Notes: generated from the letters alone by a model not told the origin. A stretch of DNA of 64,000 nt from Saccostrea echinata (GCF_033153115.1 NW_026889756.1:2108001-2172000); one strand, 5' to 3'. Shown: positions 42,929 to 57,385, counted from the first letter of the stretch. Translations and numbers: made by a program.

Positions 42929-43451
42929 ACCAATAAATCCGCCAAAAATTGTGATAACAGATGATGTAATGAAGAAAATGAAAACGGCTGAAGATACTTA
43001 TTTGAGATAAGATGTATTGTAAGCCAGTTTCTATTTCTTTATTTTGTCATCTGTCTGATTTATAACAAATCTACACCAAGTGCCATAGTGTGCATAAATG
43101 AAATTGAAATATTGCGAGAAAGTGAATGCATATTACCACGTTCGGGCACGTGAAATGTTATGATTGTTTTTGTTTGGGTTATGATGTGTGCTTTGTACTC
43201 TTGTTATTATTGTATATGCCAAAATTTTGTTTTGCTATTTTGTATATCATCATCCTGTTGTTATTTGAAGTCCCTATTATGTTTTTGAGATATTTTTGCA
43301 TTAAAAGTTTAAAAATTTACTCAACATCTTTTTATTACTCAAGTTGAGTTGCACTTTGTTTCTCTATAAGGTGTAATAACGAAAAATGGAGTTACAGTAA
43401 TAATGCTAGTTGAATGAGGAGCAAAGTGTAAATATGTGTTATGACTTAATA

Positions 43452-43455
<4 letters not shown>

Positions 43456-43524
<69 letters not shown>
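43456..43524. repeat. (AT)n microsatellite
   Basis: Direct read. Confidence 0.95.
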
Positions 43525-43529
<5 letters not shown>

Positions 43530-44039
43530 TATGTCGACAATATCGATAAAACATTATGAAATGGACATACCTCTTTCTCGGAGAATAATATATACTCTAC
43601 ATTATGTAGAATAACATTAATGGGGAACTTAAAAAAACGACTATTTTTTTACCCTGAAGCAGGGCAGAAAAACGACAAAACGTAAAGGGTCTTTCCCTAG
43701 CCTAAAAATAAACCAATTATCTTGTCATATTGGTAACAATAAGATGAACAACCATGGAAGCGTTATCTTTATCTCTTGTCAGACTTCGTTTATAGTCATT
43801 TTTTTTTCCAGAGACCTTAGGCATTTTATCAAAATAAATGTCGAAGACAATTCATGATTCCAGAATAAAATATCTGTCCCATTTTGTGGAAATCTATAAA
43901 GATCACCGTAATTCCTTTAAATCAGACCAAACCTAATACATATTTGACATATCCTTTTTAAATATTTTGGTCTTGTGTTATCCCCTGTATAGACTGAGCA
44001 TTTTTACTGACAGTTTACTATTTTTATGTACACAATTGT

Positions 44040-44960
44040 TATTTTATTTAGATTTCAACTCAAATGTTGAAAATGCTTTCATCGTCCTTGTGGACCAGGT
44101 CTTCAAATAATCTGTTGAGAATTCAGCCGACTTATTTATATATTCCTATGATGCAAAATTTATTAAACTATTTCTATATGCGTACCCATGTATGATGTTT
44201 CCGTGTCTGTGTCCGGGACACGGGGTCTGAATTTTTGCCCTGTTCACGATTCCTAATCTTTACTAGATATAGGAAATTGTCAACTGTTCGTTATCCTCAC
44301 CTATTACATTAACACCACCTTCAATTCGACATTCAGGTATATCGAGGACATTTTATCTATCAAAAAATAATTTCATCCACATGATATCGACTTATATCGA
44401 AAATAAAGGATATCGCAGGATCTGCCACATCTGTTTCCCATTTGAATGTTTTACTGATTTTAGACGTTAATTGCCGTATGACAACTAACTATTTGACAAC
44501 GAAATGATTTTCAATCGTCAACTTCTGCTATTCATGTAGTTATATTTCAAAATCGTATATGGTGTTTTGTCTTCAAACTAATTCGGTTCCGAGTACCCTG
44601 AAAAATAAGTTACTTACAAGGCTTTCAACAACCACAATTCAAAAGTTTAAATTTTGCTAATTGTTTGATCGTCATAATTTCCTTCTTTCAAAACGCAACT
44701 TATCTTGGGGACTATTTTGTCTGACATTTTTCATATCAATAATAAGTCCAATGTTTTCTTCTGATTTTAGAAACTGACTATTCTGTTCAATTGATCGATA
44801 CATAGGGTTTGCTGCGATTGTGACCGGTCAAAATGGGATGTTATCATAGGCATTTAATCCCAACTCTGATGTTTTTCAGGAGTTCTTGTGTTTGCGATTT
44901 CTATGATTCGCAGTGTTTTCAGAATTTAGAAGATTGATCCCTATATGTTATCCTCGCCTT
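44040..44960 (+). mobile_element. Degenerate Penelope-like RT relic
   Basis: ttcaattcgacattcaggtatatcgaggacattttatctatc translates as FNSTFRYIEDILSI. Heavily disrupted. Confidence 0.6.
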
Positions 44961-53100: not shown

Positions 53101-53184
53101 GCCTTTCACTGGTTAATGGTGACGTCTCTATATGAGTGAAAAATTCTCGAACAGGACGTAAAACAACATACAATCAATCAATCA
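53101..53184 (+). mobile_element. 5'-truncated SINE-type insertion with (CAAT)n tail
   Basis: 14-bp target-site duplication atcattatttgtgg (53087-53100 and 53185-53198); tail caatcaatcaatc. Confidence 0.75.
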
Positions 53185-54001
53185 ATCATTATTTGTGGAC
53201 TTTTCTAGATAAGTGAACACTGAACTTTAAAAAAATATATGAACTAAGAGGAAGTCCTGTATGGTCCATGTAAATATTTAATCAAAATTCTCAACTGATT
53301 TAATAACCTAGATTTTTTTCGTCTTCAAAATGATAATCTGGGCCTTTTTAAGAACTTTAAATTGATATGTATATCGATGATGTTTCAAAAATCACACTTG
53401 GTTGGAAGTTTGAATTTCTTTAATCCTTGAAATTAAATACTACGAACATCAAAACGCTAACCCTAACCCTGACGTTTTGGCCCATTCAAGATTTGATTGT
53501 TTGTATTAGATTCTAAATTTTAATATCTACCATGTTTAAACGTTGAAAAATTAAAGTTTAAAGTCAGTTCGGAAATATTAAAAGAGGAAAATTAAATTTG
53601 TTCATAGTAAAGTAAAAAAGTAAATTTTCTATCGAGAGATGGATTAAAAGCTCGAAATATAAATAAAGTGGTTTATGAAATTTTCAATTTACTACACTTT
53701 AAATACGAGTATAATATTATGATGATTTTGAAAAATGTATAGAAGTAAAAAAAAAAAAAAAAAAAGAAAAAGAAAAGATTTGTGACCAAAAATTTTGAAT
53801 TATAAATAATAAAAGTCAAAAGTTTTCGTTCTTCAAAGATAAAATTTCGAACAAAAGTATCTAAATTCTAAAACTTTGAACAACTCTAGAAATTTTAAGT
53901 GTAAATGATACAAAGAATCCTCATCTTTTAAGTTTAAAACAAATTTTTGAAGTCTTTAAGGCTGCTTGGAATTGAAGCATTCAAACAATAACTGACATTT
54001 G

Positions 54002-54042
<41 letters not shown>

Positions 54043-55384
54043 TTACATAGACAAGATTTGATGTTTATAAAACATCCGTGAAAAATCACTACCTATGAGG
54101 ACTTTTTTCTTGCTTAATTTTGTGTCGGTCAGAAAGACAGCGCAACGTTGCCTTTGCATAAAAAATATTTTAGTGTCCGGAACATATTACTTGTAGAAAA
54201 TATACGGAGTTATCAGAACGTACCTGATAGAATAGGTCATCTTTTTGTTTTTGTAAAGGTCCTAAGAGCTACATATGTACGTTTTTTAAGTTCTTTTAAA
54301 TCACATTATTGAATGATGTGTCAATTGATTTAAGAACAGGGCATATTTTTTCCACATCTTTTTCTCTGTAACTCACATATTATAGCCATTTGGCTATCTC
54401 TTTGAAGATGATAAGTCTCAAATGACAGCTTTAAGAATTTTTTTTTTTTTTGGTACAGGGAACTTTGATGATGAATAGTCATCTCTTATAAACATAGGAA
54501 TAGATTATGATTTAATTTTTTTTTTCTGTGTCAAAAGCAATCTGAATCGTAATTTTTCATATGTAAATGCAGAAATCAAACAGCTTTAAAACCCTTTATA
54601 AGGAACATAAATGCTCTCATGACTTCAGTCGAATTTCTTTTGTCTACAACGTTTTCGACTTAAAATAACATATGTCGATGACCTTCATAGAGTTATAAAT
54701 TGTACATGCATAAGTCTTTCAGTTTACAACTCATCACATGTTGGTATTTCTAAAATACAAAATAAAGAACACATAATCATGCAAAGAGTCTGATATTCAG
54801 TTCAAATGATATGATTTACAGAACATATTCTTTATAAACTGGGAAAGAGGAACTGATAAATAATGTCACTTATTGATTGAACAAAAATGATCTATCAAAG
54901 AATTAGTCATAAATCAACATGAGTGAGACGTGAGCAGCATATTTATTTTCCATATATACACATGTATAAAATCGAGTTGGTCTGTCTTACAAAACTACAT
55001 ATGTGTAATTCTCTTTCTTGAAATTTTCTTCATCGAATCATAAAATCAATTATATTAGCTTAAATGTTTATATATAATCTTACTAAGGCATAGTAAGAAA
55101 TCCTGCACAGAATTAAGAGATTTTCATCATAATGACTAATATTTAGACGACATTCACTCATAAAGCAGAAAATTAACAGAGAATTTTAAAGGGCTTTCAG
55201 TTGCCTATAATTAAGACTGGTGATCAGTTTTAAATTAGGTTTCAATTTGAAACTCTTTAAAAGTTAAATTTTCTGTTATTTTTTAGTTTTCCAAACATGT
55301 GTTGCTACTTGAACTGATTTTCTGCAACTTGGAAAATCAAACATTGTACATGTAATATTCGATTTTGTAAATTTGTTTTATATT

Positions 55385-55680
55385 AATTTTCATTTGTATT
55401 GTATAATTATCCATTTTTATGGCATATCTTTTTTTCCATTTCTATTCTCCAACTTTTCATTTGTATTATATAAATTTCCATTTGTATAATTTTCCATTTT
55501 TATTGTATAATTTTCCATTTGTATTATATAATTTTCTAGATAGAAAAAATACAATACAAAATGGAAAATTACAGAATAAAAATTATAAAATACAAATATA
55601 AATTATACTATACAAATAAAAGTTATATATACAAATGAAATATTTTACATTGTAAATGTGAAATTATACAGAACAAATGG
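55385..55680. repeat. Foldback-like array of about 21-bp tandem repeats in inverted arrangement
   Basis: Units like tttccatttgtattgtataat to the left of about 55535, and reverse-complement units (attatacaatacaaatggaaa-like) to the right. Confidence 0.65.
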
Positions 55681-57385
55681 AGAAGATCAAATATTGCCAT
55701 GTTTATCATACCTTTTATAGTTAGTTTTCATCAAAAGTAGAAATTCTCTCAATACACTTCGTGAAATTTTCAACATTGAAAATAAATGTCGAAATCTGAC
55801 TTATATATAGATGACATTATGAAAAAATTAGAATTTCTTTTAATGAAACATGATATTAAATGAGTTTTTCGAGCAGATGGATTATAAAATTTTAATTATT
55901 TTATTAAATAAATGCCGTTGCTGAGCTCTTCCAGGTACATGTAATTATTTTGATTTTCACTGACGTCGGTGGTTTTTACCGTCAAAGGCCCAGCAAGACT
56001 ATAATTATTCTAGTTCTTGTCAAATCAGGACACGGTTCATGTCTACTTCTATAGCTACACAAGGCAATCACTCGGCACACCTCGGCCGTTTCGTACCTCA
56101 TCTCATTGATGAAGGCGATGGAATCATCCGAGGTTTGCCGAATGATAAGACAATGTCAATTTTCCTTGGTAAAAGACATAAACAGTTCTTTCTAATCTAG
56201 TTTACGGCGGACTGATTTGTTATTTGAATGACAACAATATTAAGTCAGAATAACATACAATTATAAGAGATTTACATTAATTTATACACCAAGAAGCGGT
56301 ATTAACATAATTTATCTTTTAGTGTATTGAAGAAAGGCAATGATCTCGCTATTCCTGTTCAGTTCATTACTGAATGTTGAGCATGGCAACTTAATGTTTT
56401 CGAGGGTTTTTTTTATGTTTTAGAGATTTTATTGACAATATGGCAAAGGGATTGGACACAAATTTCAAAAACCAAGGTAGTCCTCATATATAAAATCTAA
56501 ATAGCACTAAATAGTACAACATTTTAATTATTGAAAGACGCTTCGTTTTTTTTTTCCTTAAAGAGTAATGTACAATTTAAAAGTGTACTTAAAGTCAACA
56601 TCTAGACAGTTTTTAAAGTAAACAAGAGTCTCCGGTCTTCATGTGTGACATGTGTCACATATTAAGTTAAAAAAAGTCCTTTTCATTTGTAAACTTCCAA
56701 TCAGGGATTTTTTGGTTTCAATTAAAAGAAAAAAAGTGTTTTTATAAGCAAAATATTTATTGCATAAAAATATTGCACATTAGAAATAACTCTCTCACGT
56801 CGGGCACTCACATACAGGTTACATATTGGATGATGGGCGATGTACAGATATGGGCAATATGTATACACATATAGGCGAAGAATTTGGCACTTTGGATTTT
56901 TGCATATTTGAAGTAGGATTTTAAAAACACCCTTTCATGTTTACATTGTATGAACTGTGTTAAAAAATCCTATCTCAATAACAACATAAATTTTAAACAT
57001 CAATAAATTACAAACATATATTAAATTACAAACATATAACAGTTATTTGAAGTCCCTATTATCACAGTCAATAATATCAACATATATTTATACTGATATA
57101 CAGATCGTAGATCATTGAGATATATTGGCAACATTCAATACAGAACCGAAACAAATGAAAAATTCCAGTTCAAAACAACACAAAAGATTTTTAAAAAAAT
57201 TAAGTTTGAATTACCGGTGGACAAAATTTCTCTTTAAGTATTACAAGAAAAAGAATATCTTAATACAGTAATTTTTTTTAAAAAATCAAAAAATTAGAAA
57301 GAAAAAAATCCGTGGTAAAAAACGTATTTTAACTAGTTCTGTAAATTAAAATTGGTAAATTATTTCACATGGTCATTTGAACGGT

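Follow-up and report, generated by a model that had tools for sequence, protein, structure and literature searches.

The locus described here lies in a stretch of Saccostrea echinata DNA (GCF_033153115.1 NW_026889756.1:2108001-2172000), the whole 64,000 nucleotides of which we refer to as the window, and has the layout of a tandem duplication of one convergent gene pair: A1(+)/B1(-), followed by A2(+)/B2(-). The predicted 3' untranslated regions (3'UTRs) of these four genes have two short blocks of sequence in common, which are read in sense in the A mRNAs and in antisense in the B mRNAs, and these blocks are the subject of this report. Gene A1 has exons from ~41397 to a stop codon, TAA, at 42926-42928; B1 has exons up to ~50004 and its stop at 48633-48635; A2 extends from 51351 to its stop at 52677-52679; and the exons of B2 reach up to ~59233, with the stop at 57386-57388. 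The 923 Mb assembly contains no further copies of the A and B genes. Among sequencing runs, five matched with small shares, none of them being entered as RNA. The 5' ends of B1(-) and A2(+) lie head to head, ~1.3 kb apart (window 50030-51350), and the tandem duplication may thereby have given the two genes one bidirectional promoter in common; if so, B1 and A2 would tend to be expressed together.

Protein searches, done exon by exon, place the last exon of A near the Spaetzle-type cystine-knot ligands only at low scores: its matches to the Pfam families Spaetzle (E 0.012) and DAN (E 0.0017) are both weak and below the cut-off. Among its relatives is a Magallana gigas protein of 280 aa (LOC105346062, K1QE42), which bears the UniRef name Spaetzle domain-containing protein, and the coding end of A1 coincides with the end of the C. 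gigas ortholog. B has a last exon homologous to that of A (29% identity, E 2e-6, cysteines aligned), with no match in Pfam and only unrelated weak matches in the ESM Atlas; when metagenome contigs were scanned at the protein level, no relative of A turned up. Since B is no closer to the A-type proteins of other bivalves than it is to A, we take A and B to be old, divergent Spaetzle-like paralogs that lie tail to tail, and the two proteins seem to have split no later than the A-type orthologs of oyster and scallop. The members of the two tandem copies are far closer to each other: A1/A2 and B1/B2 exons have 93-98% nucleotide identity, and the last coding exons (A1 42691-42925 vs A2 52443-52676; B1 48636-48845 vs B2 57395-57592) encode identical proteins from DNA that is 95-97% identical. 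The introns and UTRs near these last coding exons are far more diverged than the exons themselves, and the comparison indicates strong purifying selection or exon-centred gene conversion.

The predicted 3'UTR of A1 (42929-43325, +) follows directly on the stop codon and has the poly(A) signal ATTAAA at 43300-43305; that of A2 (52680-53050, +) has AATAAA at 53029-53034. On the - strand, AATAAA is found at 48077-48072 in the B1 3'UTR (48055-48632) and at 56761-56756 in that of B2 (56740-57385). There is a single conserved canonical poly(A) signal per gene, downstream of both blocks in the gene's own sense, and the predicted A and B poly(A) sites are 4.7 kb (pair 1) and 3.7 kb (pair 2) apart. A1 alone has an extra canonical AATAAA at 42932-42937, four bases past the stop codon; A2 is without such a signal.

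Block 1 is a 20-mer, TTATTTGAAGTCCCTATTAT on the + strand, which is exact in A1 (43261-43280), A2 (52989-53008) and B2 (57043-57062), and has one change, G>A at 48332, in its B1 copy (48323-48342, +); A1 and B2 share a 21-mer (43260-43280 in A1). Block 2 is the 12-mer CACGTTCGGGCA in A1 (43137-43148, +) and A2 (52872-52883, +), and the 11-mer CACGTCGGGCA, with one T fewer, in B1 (48112-48122, +) and B2 (56796-56806, +). In A1 an imperfect match to the B copies runs on to ~43154, and block 2 as a whole can be extended to ~17 nt with one bulge and one mismatch. All eight copies lie inside the predicted 3'UTRs of the two convergent pairs, and shuffled sequences contain the 20-mer in none of the cases. 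The predicted A mRNA has block 2, ~110 nt, block 1, ~20 nt and the poly(A) signal, in that order, while the predicted B mRNA has the reverse complement of block 1, 200-236 nt, the reverse complement of block 2, ~35 nt and the poly(A) signal, giving a block-to-block spacing of 112 nt vs 200-236 nt. At the DNA level, the arrangement is most simply described as two co-linear blocks repeated in direct orientation. A preliminary description of this DNA, made from the sequence alone, had reported both blocks in all four 3'UTRs, sense in A, antisense in B and in reciprocal order; the copies are where it had placed them, and the gene models bear out the strands and the order.

Several simple repeats lie in or near the same UTRs: a (GT)n microsatellite (52826-52860) inside the A2 3'UTR directly upstream of block 2, with none in A1; a (TA)n microsatellite (43456-43530) just past the A1 poly(A) site and again at 40085-40167; and a T-run region (48561-48601) in the proximal B1 3'UTR.

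The blocks are confined to this locus. At 0-1 mismatches the 20-mer occurs at only these four places in the 923 Mb genome, and at 2 mismatches it has 15 matches vs 14 for a reversed-pattern control, which is the control rate; the UTR segments likewise have no other copy in the genome. An origin as a fragment of a dispersed repeat or transposon, which the preliminary description had named as one way in which its proposal could fail, is thereby ruled out. Chance is ruled out for both blocks as well, by shuffles, word statistics and a scan of the window for orphan repeats: the A-to-B 20/21-mer is the sole orphan exact repeat of at least 20 nt in the window, where chance orphans end at 17 nt, and a match of the block 2 type (an 11-mer with one indel) among paralog-conserved words arises in the same orientation in 0.3% of shuffles. 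Nine exact matches to the 20-mer in metagenome contigs have dissimilar flanks, one of them lying inside an unrelated 459-aa open reading frame, and are taken here as chance matches.

The surroundings of the blocks have changed to very different degrees. The intergenic DNA between A and B has nothing detectable in common between pair 1 (4.7 kb) and pair 2 (3.7 kb). The distal A UTR is still alignable (43137-43330 vs 52872-53058, 73%), and the longest identical run in the A1/A2 UTR alignment is the 20-mer. The B UTRs have two islands of B1/B2 conservation: 48061-48176 at 86%, and 48289-48360 at 78% with the 20-mer at its centre. The former includes a 53-nt stretch (48072-48124 in B1, 56756-56808 in B2) that is identical in the two genes and spans the poly(A) signal and the reverse complement of block 2. 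Since only 11 nt of this stretch are common to A, the remainder must be conserved for another reason, for example 3'-end formation or gene conversion. Beside or between the blocks, A and B have no convincing similarity in either orientation, in agreement with the earlier claim that the rest of the UTRs had drifted. A candidate for residual homology, a third co-linear match between A1 43109-43136 and the B poly(A) region, was rejected (p ~0.07, in A1 only).

This pattern bears on whether the blocks are a functionless relic of a local direct duplication, of a templated repair insertion or of a former UTR overlap, with fragments that survive through the help of gene conversion between paralogs. 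The similarity of A1/A2 and of B1/B2 exons is in keeping with such an origin, as conversion or a modest age could keep identical runs, and a 20-nt identical A1/A2 run alone is not very improbable at 75-80% identity. Conversion between paralogs cannot, however, give A-to-B identity without flanking homology, and both co-linear blocks are kept in four copies with one change in ~124 nt. A neutrally decaying longer copied segment would not leave 20 + 11 intact bases in four copies, and whereas the blocks lie within conserved UTR islands, the intergenic DNA of pair 1 can no longer be aligned with that of pair 2, so complete has its turnover been; the window has no second orphan repeat of at least 20 nt. 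A relic is for these reasons improbable in our estimate, and the blocks are probably under purifying selection or, failing that, have a very unusual short-patch origin.

Two features of the intergenic DNA may be recorded here. Between A1 and B1, 44319-44376 and 46278-46742 are inverted copies of 1171-1227 and 4718-5106, and are probably transposon fragments; the A2-B2 intergenic DNA has none. Between A2 and B2 there is an AT-rich tandem and inverted repeat (55360-55680) with a sub-threshold Rfam match to mir-2574 (25 bits vs a gathering threshold of 90, E 0.063), which is probably a mere palindromic repeat.

The preliminary description had further claimed that the A and B UTRs are similar in the sense orientation between the blocks and at the poly(A) site, and had used this as an argument against a simple inverted duplication. 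Short motifs of this kind do exist: the 7-mers ATCATCC, AAGTGCC, TGTATAT and CAATAAA and two AT-rich words are common to all four UTRs in the sense orientation, and TGCCAAA is among the short motifs present. The local alignment of A and B UTRs in this orientation does not rise above shuffles, and a global alignment of the distal UTRs is significant for A1 alone (A1-B1 p=0.009, A1-B2 p=0.03; A2 vs either B not significant), such that the argument built on it is statistically weak. The similarity is unlikely to be inherited UTR homology because the A/B protein split looks very old, and we regard it as unproven. An ancestral single hairpin whose arms were inherited by both paralogs was tried as an explanation, since an inverted repeat reads alike on both strands, and is not supported: within one UTR, the arms of A are no more complementary than baseline (-5.8 to -8.6 kcal/mol) and those of B only weakly so (-12.4 to -13.3 kcal/mol), as compared with shuffled arms at -10.2±3.6 kcal/mol and with -24 to -32 kcal/mol for the arm pairs in trans (A:B).

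In silico, the two blocks dominate the pairing between the predicted A and B transcripts. Block 1 forms a local A:B duplex of -26.8 to -31.6 kcal/mol and block 2 with its extension one of -23.0 to -28.0 kcal/mol, as against best local duplexes with shuffled B of -18.6±1.7 and -19.2±1.7 kcal/mol (minimum -21.9 kcal/mol). In 30-nt windows the two top-ranking local duplexes are those of the blocks in each of the four A x B combinations, and after opening costs a net energy of -12 to -23.5 kcal/mol is retained by block 1 and of -5 to -11 kcal/mol by block 2. Cofolding against shuffled controls, a check that the preliminary description had proposed, gives binding far beyond the shuffles: the distal UTR segments in A x B combination reach -22 to -43 kcal/mol (z -4.1 to -9.0) vs -9 to -14 kcal/mol for shuffled B, sense-sense controls stay at shuffle level (-8 to -15 kcal/mol), and in four of four combinations both blocks are paired between the molecules, in the antiparallel register that was expected. 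An unrestricted duplexfold of whole UTRs was uninformative, with full-length duplexes scoring like shuffles. As for predicted accessibility, block 1 of A1 is in the most open 1% of the transcript end and that of A2 near the 90th percentile, and both A copies of block 2 are poor.

In the dimerisation of 3'UTRs by kissing loops, of the oskar/bicoid type, stable stem-loops present the complementary loop bases. At block 2, the A genes have a 5-bp stem with the loop UCGGGC (-5.1 and -2.3 kcal/mol), which is no better than in shuffles, and in B no stable hairpin forms; stems this weak rule out kissing hairpins at block 2.

Identity on the same DNA strand is, in convergent genes such as these, complementarity of the two transcripts, and conservation alone cannot separate a reading at the RNA level from one at the DNA level. 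On the latter reading, the blocks would be the binding sites of a two-part module with a cis-regulatory, boundary or termination role, duplicated directly so that each gene received one copy, with the complementarity of the transcripts as a by-product. All copies have the same chromosomal orientation and order, the spacing of the blocks varies (112 vs 200-236 nt) as it may in enhancers, and the block edges are sharp, all of which suits such a module. The Rel/NF-kappaB consensus is GGGRNWYYCC. The reverse complement of block 1, GGGACTTCAA (GGGATTTCAA in B1), contains GGGACTTC, which we take to resemble a Rel/NF-kappaB half site; a kappaB-like site would suit Toll-ligand genes, and the base that varies falls on a degenerate position. 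The match to the ten-base consensus, however, holds for the first eight positions and fails at the last two, and a perfect conservation of 20-21 nt is long for one factor. Both modules, moreover, fall within predicted UTRs, a short way before the poly(A) signals.

Two further features of the blocks lean towards the RNA level and count against a protein-binding site: the one-base A/B indel in the middle of block 2 and the direction of the substitutions. The indel, which was fixed before the tandem duplication, would be tolerated as a bulge in a helix, while it would shift the frame of a protein site. The arm sequences show, in the blocks or directly beside them, five substitutions that affect a single copy; four of these are of the type that turns a Watson-Crick pair into G:U, which is one substitution type in four: the G>A of B1 in block 1, and C>T in A2, T>C in B2 and G>A in B2, each just after block 2. 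The fifth, a C>A at the edge in A1, is of another type. In this small, post hoc test, the chance of at least four out of five G:U-type changes is ~0.015-0.03, with a transition share of ~0.47 in these UTRs. For the B1 change the earlier claim of a preserved pair stands, as the U in the B1 mRNA faces a G of the A mRNA (48332). The direction of these changes favours tolerance of G:U pairs, and we consider a DNA-level element, on balance, rather unlikely.

A further possibility is that an endo-siRNA or genic 3'UTR piRNA of 20-30 nt over block 1, made from the A transcript, the B transcript or an A:B duplex, guides Argonaute/PIWI cleavage of the mRNA of the other paralog. In its length and perfect match, block 1 is like the typical guide and target of a slicing reaction, and its edges are sharp; A or B would have to be the source of any such RNA, as the genome has no other. 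Folds of ±50 and ±70 nt around block 1, on both strands and in all copies, give no conserved miRNA-type hairpin (z -1.3 to +1.5), the exception to this null being the B2 sense fold, in which the block lies in the loop of an AT-repeat stem that is not shared with B1; a search of the UTR segments against Rfam is empty. These two results tell against a miRNA-type hairpin or a known RNA family, and leave the small-RNA model without a hairpin precursor around the block. A 20-bp duplex is, further, too short for Dicer, block 2 is left unexplained, and the 20-mer has no match in the searched literature. We accordingly regard cross-regulation by small RNAs as highly doubtful.

The reading that we prefer is that the blocks are kept because they make the A and B transcripts complementary, with a direct antiparallel 3'UTR-3'UTR pairing as the most likely mode. 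Block 2 of A would pair with the poly(A)-proximal site of B, and the poly(A)-proximal block 1 of A with the mid-UTR site of B; such pairing may couple the fate of the two mRNAs in their stability, 3'-end use, localisation or translation. As to origin, a segment that was once common to the tail-to-tail UTRs, or was copied between them, would have undergone a direct duplication; the convergent genes may, for example, have had overlapping 3' ends that were later separated, with only the pairing blocks retained. The antiparallel two-arm heteroduplex of A and B put forward in the preliminary description draws support from the uniqueness of the blocks to the locus, their position upstream of the poly(A) signals, their rank as the top duplexes, the cofolds and the wobble-type changes; the same-strand identity fits a DNA element equally well, and the sequence data suit a small-RNA route too. 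By these models the heteroduplex is plausible on thermodynamic grounds, and the substitutions favour it slightly; it is unproven, and we hold it tentatively, as a possibility that falls somewhat short of probable.

A number of points weigh against it. The same-strand identity is predicted by a DNA-binding-site model as well; four copies in one genome amount to only two independent comparisons; and a 20-bp duplex in trans is short for ordinary mRNAs. The modelled accessibility of the blocks is inconsistent among copies, with A2 block 1 poorly accessible. The wobble test has the small and post hoc character mentioned above, and its A2 change lies in a CpG. The AATAAA at 42932 of A1, if used, could give a very short 3'UTR without both blocks.

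A more specific form of the pairing model is that of a dedicated two-arm heteroduplex that couples the mRNAs of paralogous cystine-knot ligand subunits and is selected on base pairing itself, not on sequence. It would serve co-localised or co-ordinated translation or a reciprocal control of dosage, and its marks would be the G:U-tolerant changes and the tolerated bulge. We regard this form as quite unlikely, and the idea that A and B are subunits of a heterodimer is purely inferential.

Among known systems, the 'parallel' type of trans natural antisense pair comes closest, with its descent from a cis pairing region that was once shared. Pairs of this class have more than one co-linear pairing region and arise from cis-antisense pairs by duplication; most catalogued pairing regions of trans pairs are >50 bp and imperfect (Li et al., 2008; PMC2528163). 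The blocks resemble them in that transcripts of different loci have more than one co-linear pairing region, and a duplication origin fits the direct-repeat layout seen here. The complementary regions lie in two loci and are transcribed in sense, as far as the predicted transcripts go, and they belong to no known or dispersed repeat, being unique in 923 Mb. They differ in that the pairing regions are 20-21 and 11-17 nt with dissimilar flanks, and so fall short of the >50 bp length, and in that the partners are protein-coding paralogs 4-5 kb apart, with predicted transcripts. A cis natural antisense pair is similar in being a tail-to-tail pair with complementary 3'UTRs, and is a plausible ancestral state. 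In the present case, the predicted transcripts share no DNA: their poly(A) signals are at 43300/48077 and 53029/56761, with unrelated DNA between, and because the predicted poly(A) sites are 4.7 and 3.7 kb apart the complementarity comes from two separate DNA copies.

Two other systems offer partial parallels. According to Gong and Maquat, intermolecular 3'UTR-3'UTR duplexes reportedly recruit Staufen in Staufen-mediated mRNA decay, and are formed by oppositely oriented dispersed Alu/SINE repeats. The likeness is that pairing between the 3'UTRs of two mRNAs makes a regulatory double-stranded site, which is here a prediction; those duplexes derive from dispersed Alu/SINE elements, whereas the blocks are unique to one locus and have no other genomic copies. 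In the mollusc Lymnaea, a NOS-related antisense RNA from a paralogous locus is said by Korneev et al. to regulate the mRNA of its relative in trans. This too is a molluscan transcript of a paralogous locus with a region antisense to a relative's mRNA; there, however, the region is >100 nt and arose as an internal inversion in a pseudogene that gives a non-coding regulator, while at the present locus both partners are apparently intact coding genes and the blocks are much shorter. To our knowledge, functional mRNA-mRNA pairing through short, dedicated, non-repeat 3'UTR sequences has rarely been documented in animals.

Were the blocks a DNA element instead, they would still be of use as a caution, showing how conservation on one strand in convergent UTRs looks like antisense complementarity. 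If they are functional at the RNA level, very short pairing regions, a non-repeat sequence and two coding paralogs as partners would set them apart from known trans antisense pairs. If they act by pairing, the locus would be a compact, testable case of paralogs that regulate or accompany each other at the RNA level, with a natural replicate built in, as there are two A/B pairs, and with host genes that are Toll-ligand-like and of immune or developmental interest in oysters.

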